The notes: a model not told the origin generated them from the sequence alone. Shown: positions 40,871 to 64,000, numbered from the stretch's first letter. The stretch: DNA of 64,000 nucleotides from Paraphysomonas bandaiensis (GCA_965644295.1 CBFFRP010000655.1:18792-82791), one strand, 5' to 3'. Made by a program: numbers and translations.

Positions 40871-43800
40871 TTAAGATTCACACTCCTCTACCGCCCCAGG
40901 ATCAAAGCCTTCCCCAAGTGTGTGCAGACATGAAGAATAGCAGGATAATCCATCATTACCAAATACATGGAGATATTCGAGAGATGTCATATTGCACAGC
41001 GAATCGGGAAGAGATCCAGTAAAATGGTTGGAAGAAAATAGAATGTGTTTGAGTTGAGTCAACCCGCTAAGTGAAGATGAAATAGACCCAGAGAGAGAGT
41101 TACTGGATAAACTGATGTACTCAAGTGATGAAATACGATCCAAAGTAGAGGGTAGACTGCCAGTTAAAGAGTTGCTATACAGTCCTAAGAATTTCAACGC
41201 CTGCAGTCTTCCGATTTCATCTGGTATACTTCCAGTAAAAGCATTTACACCGAGATTGATATAAGCGGCGCCTGATAGACTACCAATTCTGGAGGGGATG
41301 GTGGAAGAAAATAAATTTAATGAAAGATCAAGGTGAGAGAGAAACTGCAGAGACCAAACTTCTTCCGGAATGGGACCCGAAAGGTAGTTGTTTGACATGT
41401 CCAAGAATGTTAAATTCTTCAATCCACCTATTGTGGGTCGTAGCTGACCGCTCAACCCAAACCCTTTAGTATTAATACCGTTGACGTCAACAGTATACTC
41501 ATCACTGCCGATATTACGGTGAAAGCTACAATTTACACCCGTCCAGAAGCATACATGTATGTCAGGTATCCCGAATGTACAGCTCCAGCCAGTAAGATTC
41601 ACAGACTCATGTTGGCCAGAAGGAAGATTATACAATGCCAAATCACATAACGCCATCTCAGTAGCAGAAATATTCTGCATATTATTCACTAGAGAAGGCA
41701 ACAGAGAAGGCGTACACGTGGGCACTACTGTTGGAGATACAGTAGGAGCATTAGTGGGAACTACTGTTGGACTCACTGTGGGCAATGATGTTGGAGATAC
41801 AGTAGGAGCATTAGTGGGAACTACTGTTGGACTCACTGTGGGCAATGATGTTGGAGATACAGTTGGAGCATCCGTGGGAACCACTGTTGGACTCACTGTG
41901 GGCAATGATGTTGGAGATACAGTTGGAGCATCCGTGGGAACTACTGTTGGACTCACTGTGGGCAATGATGTTGGAGATACAGTAGGAGCATCCGTGGGAA
42001 CTACTGTTGGACTCACTGTGGGTGCGGATGTTGGAGATACAGTAGGAGCATCCGTGGGAACTACTGTTGGACTCACTGTGGGCAATGATGTTGGAGATAC
42101 AGTAGGAGCATTAGTGGGAACTACTGTTGGACTCACTGTGGGTGCGGATGTTGGAGATACAGTAGGAGCATTAGTGGGAACCACTGTTGGACTCACTGTG
42201 GGAAATGATGTTGGAGATACAGTAGGAGCATCCGTGGGAACTACTGTTGGACTCACTGTGGGCAATGATGTTGGAGATACAGTAGGAGCTTTAGTGGGAA
42301 CCACTGTTGGACTCACTGTGGGTGCGGATGTAGGAGCATGCGTGGGAACTACTGTTGGACTCACTGTGGGCAATGATGTTGGAGATACAGTAGGAGCATC
42401 CGTGGGAACTATTGTTGGACTCACTGTGGGTGCGGATGTTGGAGATACAGTAGGAGCATCCGTGGGAACTACTGTTGGACTCACTGTGGGCAATGATGTT
42501 GGAGATACAGTAGGAGCATTAGTGGGAACTACTGTTGGACTCACTGTGGGCAATGATGTTGGAGATACAGTAGGAGCATCCGTGGGAACCACTGTTGGAC
42601 TCACTGTGGGCAATGATGTTGGAGATACAGTAGGAGCATCCGTGGGAACTACTGTTGGACTCACTGTGGGCAATGATGTTGGAGATACAGTAGGAGCATT
42701 AGTGGGAACCACTGTTGGACTCACTGTGGGTGCGGATGTAGGAGCATGCGTGGGAACTACTGTTGGACTCACTGTGGGTGCGGATGTTGGAGATACAGTA
42801 GGAGCATCCGTGGGAACTATTGTTGGACTCACTGTGGGTGCGGATGTTGGAGATACAGTAGGAGCATTAGTGGGAACTACTGTTGGACTCACTGTGGGCA
42901 ATGATGTTGGAGATACAGTAGGAGCATTAGTGGGAACCACTGTTGGACTCACTGTGGGAAATGATGTTGGAGATACAGTAGGAGCATCCGTGGGAACTAC
43001 TGTTGGACTCACTGTGGGCAATGATGTTGGAGATACAGTAGGAGCATTAGTGGGAACCACTGTTGGACTCACTGTGGGTGCGGATGTAGGAGCATGCGTG
43101 GGAACTACTGTTGGACTCACTGTGGGCAATGATGTTGGAGATACAGTAGGAGCATCCGTGGGAACTATTGTTGGACTCACTGTGGGTGCGGATGTTGGAG
43201 ATACAGTAGGAGCATTAGTGGGAACTACTGTTGGACTCACTGTGGGCAATGATGTTGGAGATACAGTAGGAGCATTAGTGGGAACTACTGTTGGACTCAC
43301 TGTGGGCAATGATGTTGGAGATACAGTAGGAGCATCCGTGGGAACCACTGTTGGACTCACTGTGGGTGCGGATGTTGGAGATACAGTAGGAGCATCCGTG
43401 GGAACCACTGTTGGACTCACTGTGGGTGCGGATGTTGGAGATACAGTAGGAGCATCCGTGGGAACCACTGTTGGACTCACTGTGGGCAATGATGTTGGAG
43501 ATACAGTAGGAGCATCCGTGGGAACTACTGTTGGACTCACTGTGGGCAATGATGTTGGAGATACAGTAGGAGCATCCGTGGGAACTATTGTTGGACTCAC
43601 TGTGGGTGCGGATGTTGGAGATACAGTAGGAGCTTTAGTGGGAACTACTGTTGGACTCACTGTGGGCAATGATGTTGGAGATACAGTAGGAGCATTAGTG
43701 GGAACCACTGTTGGACTCACTGTGGGAAATGATGTTGGAGATACAGTAGGAGCATCCGTGGGAACTACTGTTGGACTCACTGTGGGCAATGATGTTGGAG

Positions 43801-46800
43801 ATACAGTAGGAGCATTAGTGGGAACTACTGTTGGACTCACTGTGGGTGCGGATGTAGGAGCATGCGTGGGAACTACTGTTGGACTCACTGTGGGCAATGA
43901 TGTTGGAGATACAGTAGGAGCATCCGTGGGAACTATTGTTGGACTCACTGTGGGTGCGGATGTTGGAGATACAGTAGGAGCATCCGTGGGAACCACTGTT
44001 GGACTCACTGTGGGTGCGGATGTTGGAGATACAGTAGGAGCATCCGTGGGAACCACTGTTGGACTCACTGTGGGCAATGATGTTGGAGATACAGTAGGAG
44101 CATCCGTGGGAACTACTGTTGGACTCACTGTGGGCAATGATGTTGGAGATACAGTAGGAGCATCCGTGGGAACTACTGTTGGACTCACTGTGGGCAATGA
44201 TGTTGGAGATACAGTAGGAGCATCCGTGGGAACTACTGTTGGACTCACTGTGGGCAATGATGTTGGAGATACAGTAGGAGCATCCGTGGGAACTATTGTT
44301 GGACTCACTGTGGGTGCGGATGTTGGAGATACAGTAGGAACATCCGTGGGAACTACTGTTGGACTCACTGTGGGCAATGATGTTGGAGATACAGTAGGAG
44401 CATCCGTGGGAACTACTGTTGGACTCACTGTGGGTGCGGATGTTGGAGATACAGTAGGAGCATCCGTGGGAACTACTGTTGGACTCACTGTGGGCAATGA
44501 TGTTGGAGATACAGTAGGAGCATTAGTGGGAACCACTGTTGGACTCACTGTGGGAAATGATGTTGGAGATACAGTAGGAGCATCCGTGGGAACTACTGTT
44601 GGACTCACTGTGGGCAATGATGTTGGAGATACAGTAGGAGCATTAGTGGGAACCACTGTTGGACTCACTGTGGGTGCGGATGTAGGAGCATGCGTGGGAA
44701 CTACTGTTGGACTCACTGTGGGCAATGATGTTGGAGATACAGTAGGAGCATCCGTGGGAACTATTGTTGGACTCACTGTGGGTGCGGATGTTGGAGATAC
44801 AGTAGGAGCATCCGTGGGAACCACTGTTGGACTCACTGTGGGTGCGGATGTTGGAGATACAGTAGGAGCATCCGTGGGAACCACTGTTGGACTCACTGTG
44901 GGTGCGGATGTTGGAGATACAGTAGGAGCATGCGTGGGAACTACTGTTGGACTCACTGTGGGCAATGATGTTGGAGATACAGTAGGAGCATCCGTGGGAA
45001 CCACTGTTGGACTCACTGTGGGTGCGGATGTTGGAGATACAGTAGGAGCATCCGTGGGAACCACTGTTGGACTCACTGTGGGTGCGGATGTTGGAGATAC
45101 AGTAGGAGCATCCGTGGGAACTACTGTTGGACTCACTGTGGGCAATGATGTTGGAGATACAGTAGGAGCATTAGTGGGAACTACTGTTGGACTCACTGTG
45201 GGTGCGGATGTTGGAGATACAGTAGGAGCATCCGTGGGAACCACTGTTGGACTCACTGTGGGCAATGATGTTGGAGATACAGTAGGAGCATCCGTGGGAA
45301 CTACTGTTGGACTCACTGTGGGTGCGGATGTTGGAGATACAGTAGGAGCATTAGTGGGAACTACTGTTGGACTCACTGTGGGCAATGATGTTGGAGATAC
45401 AGTAGGAGCATCCGTGGGAACTACTGTTGGACTCACTGTGGGCAATGATGTTGGAGATACAGTAGGAGCATCCGTGGGAACCACTGTTGGACTCACTGTG
45501 GGCAATGATGTTGGAGATACAGTAGGAGCATCCGTGGGAACTACTGTTGGACTCACTGTGGGTGCGGATGTTGGAGATACAGTAGGAGCATCCGTGGGAA
45601 CCACTGTTGGACTCACTGTGGGCAATGATGTTGGAGATACAGTAGGAGCATCCGTGGGAACTACTGTTGGACTCACTGTGGGTGCGGATGTTGGAGATAC
45701 AGTAGGAGCATTAGTGGGAACTACTGTTGGACTCACTGTGGGCAATGATGTTGGAGATACAGTAGGAGCATCCGTGGGAACTACTGTTGGACTCACTGTG
45801 GGCAATGATGTTGGAGATACAGTAGGAGCATCCGTGGGAACCACTGTTGGACTCACTGTGGGCAATGATGTTGGAGATACAGTAGGAGCATCCGTGGGAA
45901 CCACTGTTGGACTCACTGTGGGCAATGATGTTGGAGATACAGTAGGAGCATCCGTGGGAACCACTGTTGGACTCACTGTGGGTGCGGATGTTGGAGATAC
46001 AGTAGGAGCATCCGTGGGAACTACTGTTGGACTCACTGTGGGTGCGGATGTTGGAGATACGGTAGGAGTTTTAGTGGGAACCACTGTTGGACTCACTGTG
46101 GGCAATGATGTTGGAGATACAGTAGGAGCATCCGTGGGAACCACTGTTGGACTCACTGTGGGTGCGGATGTTGGAGATACAGTAGGAGCATCCGTGGGAA
46201 CTACTGTTGGACTCACTGTGGGTGCGGATGTTGGAGATACAGTAGGAGCATCCGTGGGAACCACTGTTGGACTCACTGTGGGCAATGATGTTGGAGATAC
46301 AGTAGGAGCATTAGTGGGAACTACTGTTGGACTCACTGTGGGTGCGGATGTTGGAGATACAGTAGGAGCATCCGTGGGAACTACTGTTGGACTCACTGTG
46401 GGCAATGATGTTGGAGATACAGTAGGAGCATCCGTGGGAACCACTGTTGGACTCACTGTGGGCAATGATGTTGGAGATACAGTAGGAGCATCCGTGGGAA
46501 CCATTGTTGGACTCACTGTGGGTGCGGATGTTGGAGATACAGTAGGAGCATCCGTGGGAACCACTGTTGGACTCACTGTGGGTGCGGATGTTGGAGATAC
46601 AGTAGGAGCATCCGTGGGAACTACTGTTGGACTCACTGTGGGTGCAGATGTTGGAGATACAGTAGGAGCATCCGTGGGAACTACTGTTGGACTCACTGTG
46701 GGCAATGATGTTGGAGATACAGTAGGAGCATCCGTGGGAACTACTGTTGGACTCACTGTGGGCAATGATGTTGGAGATACAGTAGGAGCATCCGTGGGAA

Positions 46801-48740
46801 CTACTGTTGGACTCACTGTGGGTGCGGATGTTGGAGATACAGTAGGAGCATCCGTGGGAACTACTGTTGGACTCACTGTGGGTGCGGATGTTGGAGATAC
46901 AGTAGGAGCATCCGTGGGAACCACTGTTGGACTCACTGTGGGCAATGATGTTGGAGATACAGTAGGAGCATTAGTGGGAACTACTGTTGGACTCACTGTG
47001 GGCAATGATGTTGGAGATACAGTAGGAGCATCCGTGGGAACTACTGTTGGACTCACTGTGGGAAATGATGTTGGAGATACAGTAGGAGCATCCGTGGGAA
47101 CCACTGTTGGACTCACTGTGGGCAATGATGTTGGAGATACAGTAGGAGCATCCGTGGGAACTACTGTTGGACTCACTGTGGGAAATGATGTTGGAGATAC
47201 AGTAGGAGCATCCGTGGGAACCACTGTTGGACTCACTGTGGGTGCGGATGTTGGAGATACAGTAGGAGCATCCGTGGGAACCACTGTTGGACTCACTGTG
47301 GGTGCGAATGTTGGAGATACAGTAGGAGCATCCGTGGGAACTACTGTTGGACTCACTGTGGGCAATGATGTTGGAGATACAGTAGGAGCATCCGTGGGAA
47401 CTACTGTTGGACTCACTGTGGGTGCGGATGTTGGAGATACAGTAGGAGCATCCGTGGGAACCACTGTTGGACTCACTGTGGGCAATGCTGTTGGAGATAC
47501 AGTAGGAGCATTAGTGGGAACCACTGTTGGACTCACTGTGGGCAATGATGTTGGAGATACAGTAGGAGCATCCGTGGGAACTACTGTTGGACTCACTGTG
47601 GGCAATGATGTTGGAGATACAGTAGGAGCATCCGTGGGAACTACTGTTGGACTCACTGTGGGCAATGATGTTGGAGATACAGTAGGAGCATCCGTGGGAA
47701 CTACTGTTGGACTCACTGTGGGTGCGGATGTTGGAGATACAGTAGGAGCATCCGCGGGAACTACTGTTGGACTCACTGTGGGCAATGATGTTGGAGATAC
47801 AGTAGGAGCATTAGTGGGAACTACTGTTGGACTCACTGTGGGTGCGGATGTTGGAGATACGGTAGGAGTATCCGTGGGAACCACTGTTGGACTCACTGTG
47901 GGTGCGGATGTTGGAGATACAGTAGGAGTTTTAGTGGGAACCACTGTTGGACTCACTGTGGGCAATGATGTTGGAGATACAGTAGGAGCATCCGTGGGAA
48001 CTACTGTTGGACTCACTGTGGGTGCGGATGTTGGAGATACAGTAGGAGCATCCGTGGGAACCACTGTTGGACTCACTGTGGGAAATGATGTTGGAGATAC
48101 AGTAGGAGCATCCGTGGGAACCACTGTTGGACTCACTGTGGGCAATGATGTTGGAGATACAGTAGGAGCATTAGTGGGAACTACTGTTGGACTCACTGTG
48201 GGTGCGAATGTTGGAGTGGTTGCTGGATGTCTCGTTTTGTCCGAGTTTAGTTTTTGACACAAGAAGTTTCCATTCGACTGGCATGGGTATGTTTTCCATG
48301 TTCCATCTGCTCTCATTCGGCCACATTGCATTTGGTTTCCCTTTTTAGGTTCTTGATTTCCCCAATTAGTATAGCTCGTTGAGCTAGTTATATTATTTTC
48401 AACCCATCCCCATTTGTCATCAGTCTTGTGCATACCTATCCAGAATACATGTTGAAAAGCATTGAATATGGCTGAATTCACTTGTTCACTTGGCACTACT
48501 GCTAACCATGCTCCATCTGACTGACACACCATATGTGCACCACTCCATTTTTCTTTCTTGTTTGACGATTCAACGAATTTGTAGCAGTGATTATCACCAG
48601 TGATGGACACGTAGCCATTACTGCACTCAGCATGTGCCTGTCGCATTATCATTATACTACACATATACATTGCATGGGATAGACATTACCTGTATCCACA
48701 TACACAGAAACAAAAAGATAACACTGCATCTATCAGTCAT
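40871..48740 (-). CDS. Secreted ~2,600-aa C-type lectin domain / PT-mucin rod / plant-type LRR protein
   Basis: Exon 1 (48690-48740, MTDRCSVIFLFLCMWIQ) and the 52-nt GT-AG intron 48638-48689 complete a signal peptide ..AHA/EC. Then a CTLD (CYKF..WSGAHMVC..WIG..WGNQEP..C..W..PC..FLC), ~2,160 aa of 20-aa PT repeats, an LRRNT (GWSC..VCFWTGVNC) and ~7 LxxLxLSxNxLSGxIP repeats. Confidence 0.92.
41721..48220. repeat. Coding minisatellite, 60-bp unit (PTVSPTVVPT[D/N]APTVSPTS[L/A]), ~108 units
   Basis: Consecutive 60-nt sequence lines are in register. Five 48-bp deletion units (~42330, 42740, 43085, 43855, 44680) each shift the register by 12 nt. Confidence 0.98.
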
Positions 48741-51608: not shown

Positions 51609-52347
51609 ATCTAAACAGAGATCGTACAGTGAAGTTTCGAAGTATCGTATACGTACAGCCGCTCAGAATTTCTACGACATACTACCACGTAAAACTAGGA
51701 ACTTAAAGATGAAAATTAGACAGGCGGCTGTTCGGCGTAGATAGTGAAGTGTATTAACTCTCTGGTATCAACAGAAAAGCTTGACTTGTTTCATAGTGAT
51801 GTTTGTCAACACTATGGGAACTATTGGCGACCTTTTTTCAAGGACCATCTATGGTCGTATTCCAAGGTCGCGTATTGTAGAAGATGTACGGGAATACTGC
51901 TGGTATAGCTAAACGGGCGTCTGCCCATTTCCATTTGACGTCACGTACAGGAGTATACCGCCGTATATCGCGAATGTATGGATGGGGCTGTACTAGAAAG
52001 ATGCAAACTGAAAACTGAAAACTGAAACTGAAACTCTTCCCACAAAAAGATTTATGGGAGGGTTTTATTAACTGACGTACGAACACTTTGTATATGTAAA
52101 AAAGGCCGAGGGATGTGGTGGATGCCTGCAAAAATTTTAGTATTCGACAAAACTAATACGACTCTTCGTGACGTATCAATTTGAGGTTGATGATTCCATA
52201 TGCATCTGGCTAAAAAGTATTAATATATATATGCAACAATTGGTATAGTGAAGTAATGCCGAGAACTTTTGTCAATGCAATGAAACACAACTAGATCCCA
52301 TAATAATTTTGTTTCTTCGTGTTGATTGTGCAATACTCAACACTAGA

Positions 52348-55300
52348 ATGATAATACATAATTTTATGTTGAGCATATGTATAGTGGTGCTTACATTTAT
52401 TGTTAGCGTTGCTGCCATGGATGTTCCATACTTGAATACGAGCGATGTAACATGTATTTCTCATTCCAGTGACGTATTGCGAGATAGCCGCAACGGCACC
52501 AATTCGACATGTATGTATTTAACACTTGTAGATCAGTTTGGCGACGGCTGGGGTGATAATTCGTCACTTATATACTGGGCAACCGTTAATGGTGAAGACA
52601 GTAATATCGTGTACTTGAATTTATCCTGCAACTGCACTAAGATGATTGGATGTGTACCTGCCTTTGAGGCTAATACGGAGCAAATGTTTCACTTCCACTT
52701 TGACACAGGTGGTCGGACACCGGACTACTTCTGGGAAATTCAGTGGACAGTTCAGCTAATAGAAAATGGTGTATGGGGCAACAAATATTATGGTGGCTAC
52801 AACACAACGATGTCATTCGAATATTCTTATGTGTTTGATACCTTCACTGCGCTTTGGCTTCAAAATACGCTTGTCCACCCCGAAAATTGCGACGCGGGCG
52901 TCAACTCCTATAGTCCTATGGTCCTTACTGAATCATTTTTACAGAACTGGTATGGCAATGATACTGACGTTTACGAGCGGTACAGTACACCCGAAGACAG
53001 TACGGGTTATCTGAGTAGTGCGTGGTACATCACCAGTGCAACCAACAGATCTATTTTGTATGGATTCAGCCAGCCTGCTTGCGAGGAGCTTGGTGCAAAT
53101 TACTCCTACACTAGCTGTTTGGAGGATGGAGAATATATATTCCGCTCTACTGGATACTGTGACCCCTTATCTATGAATTTCACTTGGTGGTTTTGCGGTG
53201 TGACGGCTGAAGGGCTCTTACATATGGAATTCAATGTCGTTGACGGAGAGTGCTACCCCGTAAGTAATGGCACGAATATTGAGGTGTGTGAAGGTGATGG
53301 AAGTGGGGAAGATTCAACCGCTGTTACAACTTCTACTCTTTCGTGTTATTCTGATGACGAACTGCCCACTTTAGCCTCCAACGCTACGTGTTTGTATGTT
53401 ACTCTCCTTGATCAATTCGGAGATGGCTTTTCGGAAGACACCGGCTTTTACCACTGGACCACTGTGAATGGCGAAGAGGGGACGGTTGAATCTTATTCCC
53501 TCTCTTGTGACTGCAATAAACGAGTAGGGTGTGTCGAACCAGTAGCAGGTGATCACATGACCTACTTCACTCTTGAAGCTTTTGATGATAATGGGGCAAG
53601 TATATTACCTACACAATACTGGGAGATGCATTGGTCAGTTCAGATAGTTGAGTCTGGAGTGCTTAAACAGAAATTCTACGGTGGATACAACACAACAATG
53701 GTGTTCGAGTACACTGATGGATCGTATGCACTGGAGTACCACGAAAGGCTTTGGAATTTTCCCGATGGGTGTACTGATTGTCAGAGAACTGCTGGAGATG
53801 GAACTATATCCTATGATAACTTTGTGCAGCACGTGTCTGGGAATGGTGCTTCTAGCAGTTATGGTAATGAATCTACATCTGATTTTTTACAGACAGGATG
53901 GTATATCTCTGACGTATCCAGATCTCACTTATATGCTTTTGGTAAACCATGGTGCGATATGTCCCAAACTAATGAAGCATCCTGTGTGGCCTGTCTGGCC
54001 GACGGAGAGTACATATATCGTTCAACCGGTGCTTACGACCCTGTTGGTCACGAAGCACAGTTTGAATTCTGTGGGATAGTTGGAAATATTACTGATGAAG
54101 TTAGATTCCGCATTGTTGATGGTGTGTGTTATCCAATTGCTAATGGGGATGTGTCAGAAGTATGCGCGGACACGTTGACATCCAAACCTACATCGAGCCC
54201 CACTCCAGCACCTACGGACGCTCCAACAAGCAGCCCGAGTATTGCTCCTACTGCGAATCCAACTCGTATTCCTACTAACAGTCCAACGTGCTCTCCCACC
54301 TCACTTCCTACTTTCAATCCAACGAAAGATCCCACTCAGTCACCCACTTCTGTTCCCACGTTGCACCCAACTCTTTTTCCTACAACTAATCCCACTCCAA
54401 ACCCTACCCTAAATCCGACTGAATCCCCAACAGTGGCGCCCACTTTTGTTCCCACTGCATCTCCATCAGTGAAGCCGTCTGTTAGTCCCACGATGGCGAC
54501 AACTATTAGCATTACTCCAGAACTTGAATGTTATCCCAACCCTGGACCGGAACCTTTAGGAGACAACGAAACTTGTTTATATGTAAGTCTAGTTGACCAA
54601 TTTGGAGATGGATGGCCGGGGAATGTGAGCTACATGTACTGGGTGGAATCCCAAGGAGTTGTATCGAACTTAATATATCACGAACTGCCGAACTGTGACT
54701 GCACAAGAGTTCTGGGATGTATACACCCAACAGATTTGAACAGCGATCTTCGATTTTATATGACTGTAGATGCTGTTGATGAAAACGGTGAGTCATATAT
54801 TCCTGCCAAAGCATGGGAGATCCATTGGACTGTTCAAATTGTCGAACGTTCAGTATTGAAAGAAAAGTATTATGGTGGGTTTAATACAAGTCTAAGTTTT
54901 GGGTATTCTCGTGCAGAGGAGACATTTGAGTTGGTATGGTGGGAGAATCTATGGACTGTTCCTGAAGTGTGCAATCCTTGTGAAGATTCATCATCTGGTG
55001 TGATGTCTTTCGGAGACTTCCTCGAGGATGTTGTTGTAGCTGGGAGTAGTAGTGTTGGAAGTTTCGGTGAGGAGGAGTATTATACCCAGACAGCTTGGTA
55101 CGTTACTGATGATGAGGGTTTAAATTTGTTTGCCTATGGCGAACCCTTTTGTCGGGATGATGATGATATTTATGATTTAGCGGGTTGTCTCTCTGGCTTG
55201 CAAGATGGATCGTACGTTCTTCGTACAACAGGAGCTAGAGATCCTGAGGGGGGAGATTCGATGATTGAATATTGTGGGGTGGTAGCTTTTGCTACAGATG

Positions 55301-58300
55301 AAATTAATTTCGTTATTGAGGATAGTCAGTGTCAAGTTGGTCTTTATGGCGATGTCAGTCAAGTGTGTGATGGTCTCACTGCACGACCATCTGGCAGCCC
55401 AACTACGCGCCCAACTGTACAGCCTACTCTTTCTCCAACGCCAGTACCGACATCTCTTCCCACTATTCCACCAACTGGCTCGCCCACGTTGTCACCAACT
55501 TTTTCGCCCACAAGGAAGCCCACAAGTTCTCCAACCAGTAAACCTACGAGGAAGCCTACATTGGCCCCAACCAGTAAACCTACAGCTTCCCCTACATTTA
55601 TTCCCACGGTGAGACCCTCGAGGGATCCCACCCATGCTCCCACAAGAGCACCAACTGTGCGGCCCACCTTTTCTCCTACGACAGACCCTACCGGGCAACC
55701 AACAGGTGTTCCGACAGAGTTAGGTACGCCGTACGTGGAGAGTGACCTGATGTGCAAAGATAAATGTAATATAGATCTTCTCGAATACGAAGGAGGCAAC
55801 TCAACTTTAAATGGCACATGTCTTTCTGTTACCTTGCTTGACCAGTTCGGTGACGGTTGGTCTGGGGCAGAGTTCTTCTACTGGGTTCAAATAAATGACG
55901 ACTACACTACTCTTTTCAATATAACCGTGGACTGTAATTGTACAATGATAGCGGGTTGTATTTATCCTTCAGATTTGAACATCGATCAGCTATATCATAT
56001 GACAGTGGATGCTGTTGATGATAACGGTGATTCATACGTACCGGCCTATCCATGGGAGATCCATTGGACAGTTCAGATAGTTGAGGACGGTGTGTATATG
56101 GATAAGTATTATGGCGGATTCAACACGAGTATGACTTTTGAGTATTCTCGCGCGGAGGAGACATATGATTTGGTATGGTGGGAGAATCTATGGTCATACC
56201 CTGAGGCATGTGAAGGGTGTAACGATTTGAGTGGTGGGGGTATAACCTTTAACGATTTCCTTGATAGCGTGTTGCATACTGGTTCCGAGAGTGAAGGTAG
56301 CTATGGTAATGTTTCTCTACCTGACTACATTCAATCTGCTTGGTACATCACGGACTCCACGAGGACTACTCTTCACTCATATGCGGAGCCTTTTTGCGGG
56401 GGTGGTAATGGTAGTATTGAAGTATGTGGTTCATGTTTGGAGGATGGTGAATATGTTTTCCGTGCTACAGGTGTATGTGATGATGATAGTGGTGATGTAA
56501 CTTGGGAGTTCTGCGGTGTGTCTGGTGGTGCACAGGACCAGTTGTTGTTTACTATAGTGAATGGTGATTGTCATCCTGGTCCATATGGATCTGTCGATGG
56601 TGTATGTGCCGACGATACGACGTCATTCCCAACTAGTGTACCAAGTTCAGTACCGTCTGTAGTCCCCACTGGATTTCCAACATCAATTCCGACATCAGCA
56701 CCTACAGCGGTCCCAACATTAGTTCCGACATCATCCCCAACTGGTGTACCAACAAGTCTTCCAACAAGTACCCCAACTTCGGTTCCAACTTCATCTCCGA
56801 CATCTATTCCAACATTGATTCCCACATCTACCCCAACAAGTGCACCGACAAGTTATCCAACAGGTGTTCCTACATCACTGCCAACGTCAGTTCCTACTAG
56901 CGCCCCTACCTCGAACCCGACTGCAATTCCTACTTCGTCCCCAACTGGTGTTCCTACACGTGTACCTACGGTATCACCAACGAGTATACCAACATCACTT
57001 CCCAGCAGTATGCCGTCATCAGTCCCTACTGAACTTGGAACGGTGAATCTTGTTCCGGAGCTGGAATGCTATCCTAACCCTGGGCCGGATCTCTTAGGAA
57101 ACAATGATACTTGTTTGTATGTGACTTTAGTTGACCAGTTTGGAGATGGCTGGTCGGAGAATGTGAGCTATATGTACTGGGTTCAGATACGAGATGAATA
57201 TTCGAATGTGGTGATGCACACTCTTCCTGACTGTGGGTGTGCGAAAATGATGGGGTGTATCCATCCATCTGATTTGAACTTGGATCAGCTGTATCACATG
57301 ACTGTGGATGCTGTTGATGAAAATGGTGCGTCGTACATTCCAAGCAATGCTTGGGAGATCCATTGGAGCGTTCAAATTGTCGAGGATGGTGAGTATAAGG
57401 AAAAGTATTATGGTGGTTTCAATACAAGTCTTACTTTTGAGTATTCTCGTGCGGAGGAGACGTATGAGTTGGTATGGTGGGAGAATCTATGGACTGTTCC
57501 TGAAGTGTGCAATCCTTGTGAAGATTCATCATCTGGTGTGATGTCTTTCGGAGACTTCCTCGAGGATGTTGTTGTAGCTGGAAGTAGTAGTGTTGGAAGT
57601 TTCGGTGAGGAGGAGTATTATACCCAGACAACTTGGTACGTAACTGATGTGGATGGTATTGCATTGTACGCCTATGGGGAACCCTATTGTGGTGATGGTG
57701 ACGATGATGATTTGACGGCATGCTTATCTGGCTTAGCGGATGGTGTTTATATCTTGCGTCACACTGGCATCTGTGATTCCAATCGGGATACTGTTACTTG
57801 GTCGTATTGTGGTGTGTCTGGGAATGCACAGGACGAGTTGGAGTTTGTCATTAGCAGTGGGGCATGTCACCCTGGTCCATATGGTGATGTGGTTGCTGTG
57901 TGTAATGATACGACGACATCGAACCCTACCTCTGTACCGACCTCTGTTCCTTCTGCACTTCCAACATCTTCGCCAACTTCAGTACCAACATCGTTTCCTA
58001 CGGCAGCACCCACTGGAGTGCCAACAGCGGTGCCAACTGGCATTCCGACTTCGATTCCTAGCAGTGCTCCGACATCTGTTCCGACTTCTCTTCCAACATC
58101 ATCTCCAACATCCGTTCCAACCGGTGTACCCAGTAGTACACCAACAGGAAGGCCAACATCAATACCAACAGCTGTTCCAACTTCGTCTCCTACAAGTGTT
58201 CCATCAAGTGCACCAACGTCAATGCCATCTGCTGTGCCGACATCGATACCATCTTCCTCCCCAACATCACTACCAACAGCGTTCCCGACCTCTGTTCCGA

Positions 58301-61300
58301 CATCATTGCCAACAGGTGTTCCTACTTCTGTTCCGACATCGTCTCCAACTTCAGTTCCCACCTCTGTACCGACATCTGCACCGACAGCCGTTCCAACAGG
58401 GGTTCCAAGTGGTCAGCCTACATCTGTTCCAACTGAGCTTGGTACCCCCAATCCTGATCATGATATGATGTGTTATGACGAATGTACTCTGTATACGGAT
58501 CATGTAGTCAATCCCATAGTCAATAATACGGTCAATGGTACTTGTCTTTTTGTAACCTTGCTTGACCAGTTCGGCGACGGTTGGTCAGGAGCAAATTTCA
58601 GTTATTGGGTTCAAATCCGTGATGAGGATAGTGAATTGACAGAATTCACATTGGATTGTAATTGTACAATAATTGCGGGTTGTATTTATCCTTCAGATTT
58701 GAACATCGATCAGCAATATCATATGACAGTGGATGCTGTTGATGATAACGGTGATTCATACGTACCGGCCTATCCATGGGAGATCCATTGGACAGTTCAG
58801 ATAGTTGAGGACGGTGTGTATATGGATAAGTATTATGGCGGATTCAACACGAGTATGACTTTTGAGTATTCTCGTGCGGAGGAGACATATGATTTGGTAT
58901 GGTGGGAGAATCTATGGTCATACCCTGAGGCATGTGAAGGGTGTAACGATTTGAGTGGTGGGGGTATAACCTTTAACGATTTCCTTGATAGCGTGGTGCA
59001 TACTGGTTCCGAGAGTGAAGGTAGCTATGGTAATGTTTCTCTACCTGACTACATTCAATCTGCTTGGTACATCACGGACTCCACGAGGACTACTCTTCAC
59101 TCATATGCGGAGCCTTTTTGCGGGGGTGGTAATGGTAGTATTGAAGTATGTGGTTCATGTTTGGAGGATGGTGAATATGTTTTCCGTGCTACAGGTGTAT
59201 GTGATGATGATAGTGGTGATGTAACTTGGGAGTTCTGCGGTGTGTCTGGTGGCGCACAGGACCAGTTGTTGTTTACTATAGTGAATGGTGATTGTCATCC
59301 TGGTCCATATGGATCTGTCGATGGTGTATGTGCCGACGATACGACGTCATTCCCAACCAGTGTACCAAGTTCAGTACCGTCTGTAGTCCCCACTGGATTT
59401 CCAACATCAATTCCGACATCAGCACCTACAGCGGTCCCAACATTAGTTCCGACATCATCCCCAACTGGTGTACCAACAAGTCTTCCAACAAGTACCCCAA
59501 CTTCGGTTCCAACTTCATCTCCGACATCTATTCCAACATTGATTCCCACATCTACCCCAACAAGTGCACCGACAAGTTATCCAACAGGTGTTCCTACATC
59601 ACTGCCAACGTCAGTTCCTACTAGCGCCCCTACCTCGAACCCGACTGCAATTCCTACTTCGTCCCCAACTGGTGTTCCTACACGTGTACCTACGGCATCA
59701 CCAACGAGTATACCAACATCACTGCCCAGCAGTATGCCGTCATCAGTCCCTACTGAACTTGGAACGGTGAATCTTGTTCCGGAGCTGGAATGCTATCCTA
59801 ACCCTGGGCCGGATCCCTTAGGAAACAATGATACTTGTTTGTATGTGACTTTAGTTGACCAGTTTGGAGATGGCTGGTCGGAGAATGTGAGCTATATGTA
59901 CTGGGTTCAGATACGAGATGAATATTCGAATGTGGTGATGCACACTCTTCCTGACTGTGGGTGTGCGAAAATGATGGGGTGTATCCATCCATCTGATTTG
60001 AACTTGGATCAGCTGTATCACATGACTGTGGATGCTGTTGATGAAAATGGTGCGTCGTACATTCCAAGCAATGCTTGGGAGATCCATTGGAGTGTTCAAA
60101 TTGTCGAGGATGGTGAGTATAAGGAAAAGTATTATGGTGGTTTCAATACAAGTCTTACTTTTGAGTATTCTCGTGCGGAGGAGACGTATGAGTTGGTATG
60201 GTGGGAGAATCTATGGACTGTTCCTGAAGTGTGCAATCCTTGTGAAGATTCATCATCTGGTGTGATGTCTTTCGGAGACTTCCTCGAGGATGTTGTTGTA
60301 GCTGGAAGTAGTAGTGTTGGAAGTTTCGGTGAGGAGGAGTATTATACCCAGACAACTTGGTACGTAACTGATGTGGATGGTATTGCATTGTACGCCTATG
60401 GGGAACCCTATTGTGGTGATGGTGACGATGATGATTTGACGGCATGCTTATCTGGCTTAGCGGATGGTGTTTATATCTTGCGTCACACTGGCATCTGTGA
60501 TTCCAATCGGGATACTGTTACTTGGTCGTATTGTGGTGTGTCTGGGAATGCACAGGACGAGTTGGAGTTTGTCATTAGCAGTGGGGCATGTCACCCTGGT
60601 CCATATGGTGATGTGGTTGCTGTGTGTAATGATACGACGACATCGAACCCGACCTCTGTACCGACCTCTGTTCCTTCTGCACTTCCAACATCTTCGCCAA
60701 CTTCAGTACCAACATCGTTTCCTACGGCAGCACCCACTGGAGTGCCAACAGCGGTGCCAACTGGCATTCCGACTTCGATTCCTAGCAGTGCTCCGACATC
60801 TGTTCCGACTTCTCTTCCAACATCATCTCCAACATCCGTTCCAACCGGTGTACCCAGTAGTACACCAACAGGAAGGCCAACATCAATACCAACAGCTGTT
60901 CCAACTTCGTCTCCTACAAGTGTTCCATCAAGTGCACCAACGTCAATGCCATCTGCTGTGCCGACATCGATACCATCTTCCTCCCCAACATCACTACCAA
61001 CAGCGTTCCCGACCTCTGTTCCGACATCATTGCCAACAGGTGTTCCTACTTCTGTTCCGACATCGTCTCCAACTTCAGTTCCCACCTCTGTACCGACATC
61101 TGCACCGACAGCCGTTCCAACAGGGGTTCCAAGTGGTCAGCCTACATCTGTTCCAACTGAGCTTGGTACCCCCAATCCTGATCATGATATGATGTGTTAT
61201 GACGAATGTACTCTGTATACGGATCATGTAGTCAATCCCATAGTCAATAATACGGTCAATGGTACTTGTCTTTTTGTAACCTTGCTTGACCAGTTCGGCG

Positions 61301-64000
61301 ACGGTTGGTCAGGAGCAAATTTCAGTTATTGGGTTCAAATCCGTGATGAGGATAGTGAATTGACAGAATTCACATTGGATTGTAATTGTACAATAATTGC
61401 GGGTTGTATTTATCCTTCAGATTTGAACATCGATCAGCTATATCATATGACAGTGGATGCTGTTGATGATAACGGTGATTCATACGTACCGGCCTATCCA
61501 TGGGAGATCCATTGGACAGTTCAGATAGTTGAGGACGGTGTGTATATGGATAAGTATTATGGCGGATTCAACACGAGTATGACTTTTGAGTATTCTCGCG
61601 CGGAGGAGACATATGATTTGGTATGGTGGGAGAATCTATGGTCATACCCTGAGGCATGTGAAGGGTGTAACGATTTGAGTGGTGGGGGTATAACCTTTAA
61701 CGATTTCCTTGATAGCGTGGTGCATACTGGTTCCGAGAGTGAAGGTAGCTATGGTAATGTTTCTCTACCTGACTACATTCAATCTGCTTGGTACATCACG
61801 GACTCCACGAGGACTACTCTTCACTCATATGCGGAGCCTTTTTGCGGGGGTGGTAATGGTAGTATTGAAGTATGTGGTTCATGTTTGGAGGATGGTGAAT
61901 ATGTTTTCCGTGCTACAGGTGTATGTGATGATGATAGTGGTGATGTAACTTGGGAGTTCTGCGGTGTGTCTGGTGGCGCACAGGACCAGTTGTTGTTTAC
62001 TATAGTGAATGGTGATTGTCATCCTGGTCCATATGGATCTGTCGATGGTGTATGTGCCGACGATACGACGTCATTCCCAACCAGTGTACCAAGTTCAGTA
62101 CCGTCTGTAGTCCCCACTGGATTTCCAACATCAATTCCGACATCAGCACCTACAGCGGTCCCAACATTAGTTCCGACATCATCCCCAACTGGTGTACCAA
62201 CAAGTCTTCCAACAAGTACCCCAACTTCGGTTCCAACTTCATCTCCGACATCTATTCCAACATTGATTCCCACATCTACCCCAACAAGTGCACCGACAAG
62301 TTATCCAACAGGTGTTCCTACATCACTGCCAACGTCAGTTCCTACTAGCGCCCCTACCTCGAACCCGACTGCAATTCCTACTTCGTCCCCAACTGGTGTT
62401 CCTACACGTGTACCTACGGCATCACCAACGAGTATACCAACATCACTGCCCAGCAGTATGCCGTCATCAGTCCCTACTGAACTTGGAACGGTGAATCTTG
62501 TTCCGGAGCTGGAATGCTATCCTAACCCTGGGCCGGATCCCTTAGGAAACAATGATACTTGTTTGTATGTGACTTTAGTTGACCAGTTTGGAGATGGCTG
62601 GTCGGAGAATGTGAGCTATATGTACTGGGTTCAGATACGAGATGAATATTCGAATGTGGTGATGCACACTCTTCCTGACTGTGGGTGTGCGAAAATGATG
62701 GGGTGTATCCATCCATCTGATTTGAACTTGGATCAGCTGTATCACATGACTGTGGATGCTGTTGATGAAAATGGTGCGTCGTACATTCCAAGCAATGCTT
62801 GGGAGATCCATTGGAGTGTTCAAATTGTCGAGGATGGTGAGTATAAGGAAAAGTATTATGGTGGTTTCAATACAAGTCTTACTTTTGAGTATTCTCGTGC
62901 GGAGGAGACGTATGAGTTGGTATGGTGGGAGAATCTATGGACTGTTCCTGAAGTGTGCAATCCTTGTGAAGATTCATCATCTGGTGTGATGTCTTTCGGA
63001 GACTTCCTCGAGGATGTTGTTGTAGCTGGAAGTAGTAGTGTTGGAAGTTTCGGTGAGGAGGAGTATTATACCCAGACAACTTGGTACGTAACTGATGTGG
63101 ATGGTATTGCATTGTACGCCTATGGGGAACCCTATTGTGGTGATGGTGACGATGATGATTTGACGGCATGCTTATCTGGCTTAGCGGATGGTGTTTATAT
63201 CTTGCGTCACACTGGCATCTGTGATTCCAATCGGGATACTGTTACTTGGTCGTATTGTGGTGTGTCTGGGAATGCACAGGACGAGTTGGAGTTTGTCATT
63301 AGCAGTGGGGCATGTCACCCTGGTCCATATGGTGATGTGGTTGCTGTGTGTAATGATACGACGACATCGAACCCTACCTCTGTACCGACCTCTGTTCCTT
63401 CTGCACTTCCAACATCTTCGCCAACTTCAGTACCAACATCGTTTCCTACGGCAGCACCCACTGGAGTGCCAACAGCGGTGCCAACTGGCATTCCGACTTC
63501 GATTCCTAGCAGTGCTCCGACATCTGTTCCGACTTCTCTTCCAACATCATCTCCAACATCCGTTCCAACCGGTGTACCCAGTAGTACACCAACAGGAAGG
63601 CCAACATCAATACCAACAGCTGTTCCAACTTCGTCTCCTACAAGTGTTCCATCAAGTGCACCAACGTCAATGCCATCTGCTGTGCCGACATCGATACCAT
63701 CTTCCTCCCCAACATCACTACCAACAGCGTTCCCGACCTCTGTTCCGACATCATTGCCAACAGGTGTTCCTACTTCTGTTCCGACATCGTCTCCAACTTC
63801 AGTTCCCACCTCTGTACCGACATCTGCACCGACAGCCGTTCCAACAGGGGTTCCAAGTGGTCAGCCTACATCTGTTCCAACTGAGCTTGGTACCCCCAAT
63901 CCTGATCATGATATGATGTGTTATGACGAATGTACTCTGTATACGGATCATGTAGTCAATCCCATAGTCAATAATACGGTCAATGGTACTTGTCTTTTTG
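52348..64000 (+). CDS. Giant secreted/surface modular glycoprotein (>3,880 aa, 3'-partial): repeated ~280-aa Cys/Trp-rich LxDQFGDGW modules on PT/S mucin stalks
   Basis: ATG at 52348, signal peptide MIIHNFMLSICIVVLTFIVSVAA/MDVP. Frame +1 was stop-free in the stretches translated by hand, and the ORF track lists no frame +1 ORF here, consistent with no stop before the window edge. Modules start near 52450, 53340, 54520, 55750, 57060, 58470, 59780, 61190, 62510 and 63920 (partial). Confidence 0.92.
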   Translation, partial: MIIHNFMLSICIVVLTFIVSVAAMDVPYLNTSDVTCISHSSDVLRDSRNGTNSTCMYLTLVDQFGDGWGDNSSLIYWATVNGEDSNIVYLNLSCNCTKMIGCVPAFEANTEQMFHFHFDTGGRTPDYFWEIQWTVQLIENGVWGNKYYGGYNTTMSFEYSYVFDTFTALWLQNTLVHPENCDAGVNSYSPMVLTESFLQNWYGNDTDVYERYSTPEDSTGYLSSAWYITSATNRSILYGFSQPACEELGANYSYTSCLEDGEYIFRSTGYCDPLSMNFTWWFCGVTAEGLLHMEFNVVDGECYPVSNGTNIEVCEGDGSGEDSTAVTTSTLSCYSDDELPTLASNATCLYVTLLDQFGDGFSEDTGFYHWTTVNGEEGTVESYSLSCDCNKRVGCVEPVAGDHMTYFTLEAFDDNGASILPTQYWEMHWSVQIVESGVLKQKFYGGYNTTMVFEYTDGSYALEYHERLWNFPDGCTDCQRTAGDGTISYDNFVQHVSGNGASSSYGNESTSDFLQTGWYISDVSRSHLYAFGKPWCDMSQTNEASCVACLADGEYIYRSTGAYDPVGHEAQFEFCGIVGNITDEVRFRIVDGVCYPIANGDVSEVCADTLTSKPTSSPTPAPTDAPTSSPSIAPTANPTRIPTNSPTCSPTSLPTFNPTKDPTQSPTSVPTLHPTLFPTTNPTPNPTLNPTESPTVAPTFVPTASPSVKPSVSPTMATTISITPELECYPNPGPEPLGDNETCLYVSLVDQFGDGWPGNVSYMYWVESQGVVSNLIYHELPNCDCTRVLGCIHPTDLNSDLRFYMTVDAVDENGESYIPAKAWEIHWTVQIVERSVLKEKYYGGFNTSLSFGYSRAEETFELVWWENLWTVPEVCNPCEDSSSGVMSFGDFLEDVVVAGSSSVGSFGEEEYYTQTAWYVTDDEGLNLFAYGEPFCRDDDDIYDLAGCLSGLQDGSYVLRTTGARDPEGGDSMIEYCGVVAFATDEINFVIEDSQCQVGLYGDVSQVCDGLTARPSGSPTTRPTVQPTLSPTPVPTSLPTIPPTGSPTLSPTFSPTRKPTSSPTSKPTRKPTLAPTSKPTASPTFIPTVRPSRDPTHAPTRAPTVRPTFSPTTDPTGQPTGVPTELGTPYVESDLMCKDKCNIDLLEYEGGNSTLNGTCLSVTLLDQFGDGWSGAEFFYWVQINDDYTTLFNITVDCNCTMIAGCIYPSDLNIDQLYHMTVDAVDDNGDSYVPAYPWEIHWTVQIVEDGVYMDKYYGGFNTSMTFEYSRAEETYDLVWWENLWSYPEACEGCNDLSGGGITFNDFLDSVLHTGSESEGSYGNVSLPDYIQSAWYITDSTRTTLHSYAEPFCGGGNGSIEVCGSCLEDGEYVFRATGVCDDDSGDVTWEFCGVSGGAQDQLLFTIVNGDCHPGPYGSVDGVCADDTTSFPTSVPSSVPSVVPTGFPTSIPTSAPTAVPTLVPTSSPTGVPTSLPTSTPTSVPTSSPTSIPTLIPTSTPTSAPTSYPTGVPTSLPTSVPTSAPTSNPTAIPTSSPTGVPTRVPTVSPTSIPTSLPSSMPSSVPTELGTVNLVPELECYPNPGPDLLGNNDTCLYVTLVDQFGDGWSENVSYMYWVQIRDEYSNVVMHTLPDCGCAKMMGCIHPSDLNLDQLYHMTVDAVDENGASYIPSNAWEIHWSVQIVEDGEYKEKYYGGFNTSLTFEYSRAEETYELVWWENLWTVPEVCNPCEDSSSGVMSFGDFLEDVVVAGSSSVGSFGEEEYYTQTTWYVTDVDGIALYAYGEPYCGDGDDDDLTACLSGLADGVYILRHTGICDSNRDTVTWSYCGVSGNAQDELEFVISSGACHPGPYGDVVAVCNDTTTSNPTSVPTSVPSALPTSSPTSVPTSFPTAAPTGVPTAVPTGIPTSIPSSAPTSVPTSLPTSSPTSVPTGVPSSTPTGRPTSIPTAVPTSSPTSVPSSAPTSMPSAVPTSIPSSSPTSLPTAFPTSVPTSLPTGVPTSVPTSSPTSVPTSVPTSAPTAVPTGVPSGQPTSVPTELGTPNPDHDMMCYDECTLYTDHVVNPIVNNTVNGTCLFVTLLDQFGDGWSGANFSYWVQIRDEDSELTEFTLDCNCTIIAGCIYPSDLNIDQQYHMTVDAVDDNGDSYVPAYPWEIHWTVQIVEDGVYMDKYYGGFNTSMTFEYSRAEETYDLVWWENLWSYPEACEGCNDLSGGGITFNDFLDSVVHTGSESEGSYGNVSLPDYIQSAWYITDSTRTTLHSYAEPFCGGGNGSIEVCGSCLEDGEYVFRATGVCDDDSGDVTWEFCGVSGGAQDQLLFTIVNGDCHPGPYGSVDGVCADDTTSFPTSVPSSVPSVVPTGFPTSIPTSAPTAVPTLVPTSSPTGVPTSLPTSTPTSVPTSSPTSIPTLIPTSTPTSAPTSYPTGVPTSLPTSVPTSAPTSNPTAIPTSSPTGVPTRVPTASPTSIPTSLPSSMPSSVPTELGTVNLVPELECYPNPGPDPLGNNDTCLYVTLVDQFGDGWSENVSYMYWVQIRDEYSNVVMHTLPDCGCAKMMGCIHPSDLNLDQLYHMTVDAVDENGASYIPSNAWEIHWSVQIVEDGEYKEKYYGGFNTSLTFEYSRAEETYELVWWENLWTVPEVCNPCEDSSSGVMSFGDFLEDVVVAGSSSVGSFGEEEYYTQTTWYVTDVDGIALYAYGEPYCGDGDDDDLTACLSGLADGVYILRHTGICDSNRDTVTWSYCGVSGNAQDELEFVISSGACHPGPYGDVVAVCNDTTTSNPTSVPTSVPSALPTSSPTSVPTSFPTAAPTGVPTAVPTGIPTSIPSSAPTSVPTSLPTSSPTSVPTGVPSSTPTGRPTSIPTAVPTSSPTSVPSSAPTSMPSAVPTSIPSSSPTSLPTAFPTSVPTSLPTGVPTSVPTSSPTSVPTSVPTSAPTAVPTGVPSGQPTSVPTELGTPNPDHDMMCYDECTLYTDHVVNPIVNNTVNGTCLFVTLLDQFGDGWSGANFSYWVQIRDEDSELTEFTLDCNCTIIAGCIYPSDLNIDQLYHMTVDAVDDNGDSYVPAYPWEIHWTVQIVEDGVYMDKYYGGFNTSMTFEYSRAEETYDLVWWENLWSYPEACEGCNDLSGGGITFNDFLDSVVHTGSESEGSYGNVSLPDYIQSAWYITDSTRTTLHSYAEPFCGGGNGSIEVCGSCLEDGEYVFRATGVCDDDSGDVTWEFCGVSGGAQDQLLFTIVNGDCHPGPYGSVDGVCADDTTSFPTSVPSSVPSVVPTGFPTSIPTSAPTAVPTLVPTSSPTGVPTSLPTSTPTSVPTSSPTSIPTLIPTSTPTSAPTSYPTGVPTSLPTSVPTSAPTSNPTAIPTSSPTGVPTRVPTASPTSIPTSLPSSMPSSVPTELGTVNLVPELECYPNPGPDPLGNNDTCLYVTLVDQFGDGWSENVSYMYWVQIRDEYSNVVMHTLPDCGCAKMMGCIHPSDLNLDQLYHMTVDAVDENGASYIPSNAWEIHWSVQIVEDGEYKEKYYGGFNTSLTFEYSRAEETYELVWWENLWTVPEVCNPCEDSSSGVMSFGDFLEDVVVAGSSSVGSFGEEEYYTQTTWYVTDVDGIALYAYGEPYCGDGDDDDLTACLSGLADGVYILRHTGICDSNRDTVTWSYCGVSGNAQDELEFVISSGACHPGPYGDVVAVCNDTTTSNPTSVPTSVPSALPTSSPTSVPTSFPTAAPTGVPTAVPTGIPTSIPSSAPTSVPTSLPTSSPTSVPTGVPSSTPTGRPTSIPTAVPTSSPTSVPSSAPTSMPSAVPTSIPSSSPTSLPTAFPTSVPTSLPTGVPTSVPTSSPTSVPTSVPTSAPTAVPTGVPSGQPTSVPTELGTPNPDHDMMCYDECTLYTDHVVNPIVNNTVNGTCLF
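55951..64000. repeat. Near-identical 2,724-bp (908-aa) coding tandem repeat, ~3 copies, runs off window
   Basis: Shadow ORFs recur at exact 2,724-bp offsets (56261/58985/61709; 57740/60464/63188). Identity begins near 55951 vs 58675, and only scattered substitutions separate the copies. Confidence 0.97.

Follow-up and report, generated by a model that had tools for sequence, protein, structure and literature searches.

A giant gene cut by a contig end in Paraphysomonas bandaiensis probably encodes a mucin-like surface glycoprotein built from modules of an unnamed domain family

Introduction

A stretch of 64,000 nucleotides from Paraphysomonas bandaiensis (GCA_965644295.1, CBFFRP010000655.1:18792-82791), referred to here as the window, carries a very long reading frame at 52348-63999 of its plus strand that is absent from the lists of open reading frames (ORFs). 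The questions raised by this locus are whether the frame is a gene and what kind of protein it encodes. An initial annotation, made from the sequence alone, had proposed a giant intronless ORF for a beads-on-a-string surface protein and had seen in it a candidate for an undescribed system. The analyses described here identify the frame as the 5' part of what is probably a giant mucin-like surface glycoprotein of the secretory pathway, acting in a cell coat or in adhesion and probably anchored in the membrane. Heterotrophic nanoflagellates like Paraphysomonas are major marine bacterial grazers, and to our knowledge almost nothing is known about their surface proteins.

A stop-free frame of 3,884 codons runs off the contig

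Translation of frame +1 from the ATG at 52348 to 63999 yielded 3,884 codons with zero stops, while the other five frames contain 139-305 stops over the same span. Calculated from the base composition, the probability of a stop-free frame of this length is about 1e-89. The initial annotation had named an in-frame stop as the observation that would overturn its giant ORF; none was found, and the ORF stands. A spurious ORF was considered as well and was ruled out by this probability and the stop counts of the other frames.

Upstream, an in-frame stop is located at 52249-52251, and the ATG at 52348 is the first to follow it. On the 3' side it is the assembly, not the gene, that comes to an end: the contig (C655) terminates at 82791, which is also the end of the window. 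ORFs that run off their source go unlisted, which accounts for the omission from the ORF track pointed out earlier. What is visible is the 5' part of a gene of at least 3,884 codons, with no intron in this part. ORF lists that drop frames at contig ends miss giant repeat genes of the kind that break assemblies.

Sixteen sequencing runs contain part of the region 51800-56200, ten of them recorded as RNA. Contigs were aligned from four runs, one of a culture and three of marine metatranscriptomes in two studies; being assembled, they do not reveal the strand, the ends of the transcript or the level of expression. With at least 99% identity, the metatranscriptome contigs tile 52741-55542 and those of the culture run 52600-55860. 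Since neither set has joints, no intron is evident in the tiled stretch. The segment 51800-52534, which takes in the spacer upstream and ~190 nucleotides at the start of the ORF, is uncovered in all four runs; the silent spacer makes DNA carry-over less likely. We conclude that 52348-63999 is a real gene and that it is probably transcribed.

Cysteine-rich modules are strung on Pro/Thr/Ser linkers

A hydropathy scan detected a single strongly hydrophobic segment in the 3,884 amino acids, residues 1-30, consistent with the signal peptide that had been predicted. The motif DQFGDG occurs nine times in the ORF, and the visible gene comprises nine complete modules and, at its cut end, ~27 residues that open a tenth one of type A (Table 1). 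The claim of repeated modules therefore holds, while the number of at least ten copies does not. The module cores comprise 279-293 amino acids with 12-15 Cys, 6-10 Trp, a net charge of -26 to -43 and 3-11 N-x-S/T sequons each, in line with the acidic, sequon-bearing modules described before. Modules 1 and 2 adjoin without a linker, and every later pair is separated by a Pro/Thr/Ser (PTS) linker. These linkers, called stalks in the initial annotation and confirmed here, are 121-189 amino acids long and consist of 59-67% Pro, Thr and Ser; seven are complete, and an eighth of ~189 amino acids precedes the cut tenth module.

Repeated ORFs in other frames were also observed, with 242 amino acids on the plus strand (57740-58468, 60464-61192 and 63188-63916) and with 164 amino acids on the minus strand (57867-58361, 60591-61085 and 63315-63809). 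Both sets coincide with the 189-amino-acid PTS linkers and most probably represent frame shadows cast by low-complexity coding sequence, not genes.

Table 1. Features of the giant ORF, in window positions, and giant open frames with the module in the genome (aa, amino acids; PTS, Pro/Thr/Ser)
Feature	Position	Strand	Basis
Open reading frame, stop-free, 3,884 codons, cut by contig end	52348..63999	+	translation, contig end, stop counts
Predicted signal peptide, residues 1-23, hydrophobic core then V-A-A	52348..52416	+	hydropathy; similar paralog starts; cleavage site predicted
Module 1, most divergent; nearest are the C275 modules (50% identity)	52453..53289	+	alignment, composition
Module 2, abuts module 1	53287..54165	+	alignment, composition
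PTS linker, 121 aa	54166..54528	+	composition; sub-threshold Pfam PT repeat
Module 3, B-like	54529..55368	+	alignment, composition, tree
PTS linker, 128 aa	55369..55752	+	composition
Module 4, type A	55753..56607	+	alignment, composition, tree
Near-identical in-frame tandem unit, 2,724 nt (908 codons), ~2.95 copies	55951..64000	+	direct self-comparison
PTS linker, 153 aa	56608..57066	+	composition
Module 5, type B	57067..57903	+	alignment, composition, tree
PTS linker, 189 aa	57904..58470	+	composition
Module 6, type A, repeat copy 2	58471..59331	+	self-comparison, composition
PTS linker, 153 aa	59332..59790	+	composition
Module 7, type B, repeat copy 2	59791..60627	+	self-comparison, composition
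PTS linker, 189 aa	60628..61194	+	composition
Module 8, type A, repeat copy 3	61195..62055	+	self-comparison, composition
PTS linker, 153 aa	62056..62514	+	composition
Module 9, type B, repeat copy 3	62515..63351	+	self-comparison, composition
PTS linker, 189 aa	63352..63918	+	composition
Tenth module (type A), first ~27 residues, cut by contig end	63919..63999	+	translation, contig end
C655 (this gene), open frame 3,916 aa (3,884 from ATG)
C652, open frame 3,738 aa
C275, open frame 2,767 aa
C36, open frame 5,176 aa
C335, open frame 7,450 aa
C217, open frame 5,128 aa
C644, open frame 2,708 aa
C169, open frame 4,216 aa
C109, open frame 5,626 aa
C543, open frame 4,886 aa
C360, open frame 2,059 aa

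The last six modules lie in a tandem array whose near-identical unit has the order A module, linker, B module, linker. Copies 1 and 2 differ at 10 positions, copies 2 and 3 at three. Tandem Repeats Finder reported no repeat here, the period of 2,724 nucleotides being longer than its 500-nucleotide limit. The distal part of the gene is the product of recent tandem amplification, or of homogenisation by gene conversion, of this two-module unit. The contig breaks inside the array, and the full copy number lies beyond it.

A second contig, C652 (11,215 nucleotides), is a single end-to-end open frame on its minus strand, with 3,738 codons and seven modules, three of which have 98.2% protein identity to the A module of C655. 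No direct overlap between the two contigs could be shown. C652 is probably a continuation or an allele of the C655 gene, split off by an assembly break in the repeats.

The module defines a diverse family without a name

Alignment of the six distinct C655 modules gave a mean column identity of 57% with 10 invariant Cys. When 25 modules from 12 loci of the genome were aligned, among them all nine of C655, the same Cys/Trp/Gly skeleton was found, with D32, G35, W99, G119, G231, G239, C253 and C272 as invariant columns. The module pattern (C..TCL.V.L.D.FGDGW, C.C..GC, WEI.W.VQ, YGG.NT, WYI, C.L.DG.Y..R.TG, W.FCG, F.I..G.C, VC) recovers the motif of the initial annotation. A profile search against 1.84 billion cluster representatives (at 50% identity) returned 700 matches at E<=1e-3, 126 of them at E<=1e-30, which indicates a genuine, diverse and unnamed family. 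Names were checked for about 30 of the 700. A word-index search for homologues with the module alignment gave 3 hits, a number set by the limits of that index and by sequence length.

A Pfam search with all 25 modules at E values up to 10 found no family, only scattered chance matches. In four segments of the gene (the N-terminal 652 amino acids and modules 3-5), Pfam reported nothing except a sub-threshold PT repeat (PF04886; best 22.6 bits, E 7.5e-5, gathering cut-off 26.2 bits). A profile search of PDB sequences with the module gave no match, literature searches for its motif gave no relevant one, and a search of the ESM Atlas by features reached at best 0.87, with unnamed short clusters and a recognition below threshold. 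Together with the structural comparisons given below, these searches agree with the earlier statement that no named domain can be recognised, and none of them produced the confident match to a characterised family that had been named as grounds for rejecting it. In contrast, the term undescribed system is not appropriate: what we find is a protein family, with at least 11 loci of giant open frames in this genome and hundreds of public relatives. The description as a secretory giant with Cys-rich modules, sequons and mucin-like stalks is retained.

Named members outside the genome come from Paraphysomonas (MMETSP1103) and from Mallomonas annulata (two members), which belongs to the scale-bearing order Synurales. 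The MMETSP1103 member (P0099, taxon 36769) is encoded in the present genome at C335:115786-118839 with 100% identity over 1,018 residues. The genome's HSP90 is likewise 100% identical to an MMETSP transcript; the next sequences reach at most 92%, and Ochromonas and Ectocarpus 85-86%. The genome is therefore that of a Paraphysomonas, a heterotrophic chrysophyte with silica scales, and represents the MMETSP1103 strain or a very close one. A diatom origin is disfavoured by the 100% match to a Paraphysomonas transcript, by only modest matches to silicon transporters and by a search for light-harvesting-complex genes that found none. Three partial proteins in the family are labelled Symbiodinium microadriaticum (P0005, P0006 and P0168, corresponding to CAE7527248.1, CAE7546477.1 and CAE7409873.1), and two proteins with this label are among the best profile matches (E 3e-157 and 1e-145). 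Because all other occurrences of the family are in chrysophytes, these members may stem from a contaminating flagellate in that assembly.

Each module is predicted to be a pair of beta-sandwiches

AlphaFold2, run with the 25-sequence alignment, modelled the module as two beta-sandwich subdomains. The N-subdomain (residues 25-142) reached a predicted local distance difference test (pLDDT) of 85-95; it is followed by a disordered acidic loop (150-180) and the C-subdomain (196-279), which gave a pLDDT of 81 when folded alone with 38 sequences. With Foldseek, neither the whole module nor the C-subdomain had a PDB match at E<=1e-3 (best C-subdomain match, E 0.33), and the search of the ESM Atlas by shape reached a TM-score of at most 0.36. 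VIA-align was run exhaustively against PDB representatives; with its own noise range at Z 7-8, the best matches of the N-subdomain (TerD 2qz7, Z 6.0) and of the C-subdomain (SpyCatcher, Z 4.7) both remain below noise. The modelled fold is best described as a generic beta-sandwich, and we claim no narrower fold family.

TerD (2qz7, 2kxt) is a Ca2+-binding beta-sandwich that aligned with the N-subdomain over 113 residues (root-mean-square deviation 3.6 A), and both proteins have Asp/Gly-rich loops. However, the two have 9% identity and no profile match, and TerD is bacterial, cytoplasmic and lacks the cysteines of the module. CnaB/transthyretin-like stalk domains of pilus adhesins (SpyCatcher 4mli, Spy0125 2xic, SpaC 6m7c) recur as weak neighbours of both subdomains; they too are small beta-sandwich beads, in long surface filaments of Gram-positive bacteria. 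This is a hint only, since the scores (Z 4.7-4.9, Foldseek E >=0.33) are at noise level, sequence similarity is absent, and the C655 module is disulfide-rich without an isopeptide-bond motif.

In many relatives the C-subdomain opens with its own M-x-D-x-x-G-D-G-W strand and loop. Comparison of the N- and C-subdomain profiles with hhalign gave a probability of 84% (E 7.4e-6, 87 columns) and matched up the L-x-D-x-FGDGW start, the Cys pair, the DG-x-Y strand and the Trp strand. Because the two profiles align, the ~280-amino-acid module is a tandem pair of an ancestral unit of ~110-140 amino acids. In the C655 gene, the second GDGW loop has degenerated into the acidic loop that was modelled with low confidence.

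Paralogs point to a membrane anchor

Searching the genome with one module gave 76 matches, including giant open frames on 11 contigs (Table 1) and smaller single-module genes. In a quick maximum-likelihood tree of the modules (support by SH-aLRT only), sequences grouped partially by gene, indicating amplification within genes; the A modules of C655, C652 and C275 were joined. One of the nearest comparisons is the complete gene on C335, which follows the same beads-on-a-string plan with the same module family and PTS stalks. Its product of 7,450 amino acids starts with a signal peptide, carries 15 modules and closes with a single transmembrane helix and a short tail. Its modules are ~39-41% identical to those of C655; the A/B two-module super-repeat and the cut at the contig end are features of C655. 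The C275 paralog ends with a module, a transmembrane helix and a tail of 18 amino acids, and those on C217 and C36 with one transmembrane helix followed by a tail of 250-420 amino acids.

In the 3,884 visible residues of C655, neither a transmembrane helix beyond the signal peptide nor a glycosylphosphatidylinositol signal was found. The open frame of C652, which probably continues the gene, spans its whole contig and has no anchor either. Both observations would suit a secreted, unanchored component of mucilage, a stalk or a cyst matrix. We consider this quite unlikely, because the complete multi-module paralogs examined all carry a transmembrane helix at the C-terminus.

Other paralogs raise a different alternative. 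Those on C169, C109 and C543 (4,200-5,600 amino acids) combine a single module with about six transmembrane helices; in the two that were scanned, C169 and C109, a REJ domain was found, and C109 also has leucine-rich repeats (LRRs). Judged by these domains, C169 and C109 are polycystin-1-like giants, and a metagenomic relative (P0024) also joins module and REJ. The C655 frame could accordingly be the ectodomain of such a receptor, with REJ and a channel-like multi-helix region in the missing 3' part. Several observations make this highly unlikely: these receptors carry one module, at the tip, whereas all many-module paralogs with PTS stalks (C335, C275, C217 and C36) end in one transmembrane helix, and the REJ-type modules fall into clades separate from those of C655 in the quick tree. 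The resemblance to the polycystin-1/sea-urchin REJ family is therefore confined to paralogs and relatives with the same module at the tip of REJ giants; the visible C655 gene has no transmembrane region, and its scanned segments gave no Pfam match to REJ.

Module partners outside the genome are FG-GAP, C-type lectin, LRR, subtilase with EGF, and REJ, all of them from extracellular adhesion proteins or receptors. Many relatives of ~950 amino acids join FG-GAP repeats to a single module and a PT stretch, and in this they are similar to integrin-alpha-like FG-GAP proteins; the C655 gene, in contrast, has no FG-GAP repeats, and no integrin leg domain was present among the structural matches of the module. 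One such FG-GAP gene, C335:115786-118839 (minus strand), is located ~5 kb from the 7,450-amino-acid giant (C335 ~123900-146300, minus strand). Members of the module family may form gene clusters in the genome.

A familiar kind of protein with an undescribed bead

The paralog ends and the extracellular domain partners are the reasons for reading the C655 product as a type I membrane-anchored filament. According to this model, a signal peptide would direct to the surface a chain of compact, acidic, disulfide-rich modules of ~280 amino acids, each a tandem pair of homologous beta-sandwich units with a D-x-F-G-D-G-W loop, strung on long mucin-type PTS stalks. By analogy with the multi-module paralogs, a single transmembrane helix followed by a cytoplasmic tail probably forms the end of the gene product. 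With O-glycosylated, extended stalks, the visible part alone would reach an estimated ~0.3-0.4 micrometre from the plasma membrane (at ~0.25 nm per linker residue). The product would be a cell-coat or adhesion filament with the modules as binding or spacing beads, and scale-case material, prey surfaces and divalent cations are candidate ligands.

The plan is similar to that of animal membrane and gel-forming mucins, which also have a signal peptide, long PTS repeat stalks with Cys-rich domains between them, recent in-frame amplification of repeats and a single-pass anchor (seen here in the paralogs). The likeness of the stalks is one of Pro/Thr/Ser composition, and O-glycosylation is a prediction for this protein. 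The beads differ: here they are unnamed beta-sandwich pairs, and no vWD, C8, TIL, CysD, SEA or cystine-knot domain was detected in the Pfam scans of the gene segments and the 25 modules. The kind of protein, a giant modular mucin-like surface glycoprotein, is thus familiar, while its bead represents an undescribed domain family that is widespread in marine data. The genome devotes at least 11 giant genes and at least 76 module matches to this one unnamed domain. Naming and modelling it would provide an annotation for hundreds of hypothetical proteins from marine metagenomes and metatranscriptomes, and candidate proteins by which chrysophytes might attach their scale cases, recognise prey or sense at the cell surface.

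Several points weigh against the membrane-anchored glycoprotein. The C-terminus lies beyond the contig end, so that the anchor is taken from paralogs only, and the copy number of the 2,724-nucleotide unit may be misassembled. Glycosylation, surface location, ligand binding and Ca2+ binding by the DxFGDG loop are predictions from sequence, as are the roles in prey capture or in a scale, lorica or cyst matrix that the initial annotation suggested. The evidence for transcription comes from contigs assembled out of RNA libraries, and such libraries can include DNA; the first ~250 nucleotides of the ORF have no contig coverage. In addition, three culture runs from 2015, two of them with the same species label, contain almost none of the gene's words. 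We nevertheless regard this reading as the probable one.

Scale case and prey as possible targets of the filament

Two narrower functions were weighed. The filament could be rooted in the plasma membrane and reach into the silica-scale layer, where the acidic modules would hold or space the scales, perhaps via divalent-cation bridges. The named carriers of the family, Paraphysomonas and Mallomonas annulata, are both silica-scaled chrysophytes, and the estimated length of the filament is of the order expected for a cell covering. The genome also contains at least seven silicon-transporter-like genes (on C348, C406, C398, C150, C149 and C298), which scored only 35-89 bits against a diatom-based Pfam model; the two halves of such a gene often match one and the same half of the model, which suggests divergent chrysophyte silicon transporters. 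However, silica should repel strongly acidic modules unless cations bridge them, the phyletic pattern is anecdotal with so few of the matches checked by name, and literature searches for chrysophyte scale proteins found nothing relevant and no scale proteome. Silicanin-1 is stated to be missing in both Paraphysomonas and Mallomonas (PMC5525289). Overall, we judge the role as a scale tether to be unlikely.

A broader version would make the GDGW double-sandwich an extracellular superfamily specific to silica-scaled chrysophytes, with the giant multi-module members as tethers that hold and space the scale case. We rate this somewhat lower again; if true, it would give a first molecular handle on the extracellular assembly of chrysophyte scale cases.

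Alternatively, the protein could be an adhesin for prey capture or recognition, with the modules as lectin-like binding beads on mucin stalks. No genes for light-harvesting complexes were found in the genome and the organism therefore appears heterotrophic; Paraphysomonas is a bacterivore. Relatives join the module to C-type lectin and LRR domains, and the adjoining gene encodes a lectin-mucin-LRR protein (see below). On the other hand, the module has no above-noise similarity to any known carbohydrate-binding fold, and the family is also present in Mallomonas, from a scaled algal order. A role in prey capture seems to us just as unlikely as the tethering of scales.

Neighbouring genes

The divergent neighbour of the giant gene (window 40874-48670, minus strand) encodes 2,599 amino acids with a C-type lectin domain, a very long PT-repeat rod and C-terminal LRRs. 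The Pfam PT repeat scored 825 bits, and the regional GC skew is ~+0.36. Its lectin and LRR domains are of the same kinds as those fused to the module in relatives. On C36, the stretch 86000-112000 (plus strand) that contains the 5,176-amino-acid module gene has a second long ORF of 1,594 amino acids. Its C-terminal motif resembles that of Ty1/copia-type retrotransposon polyproteins.

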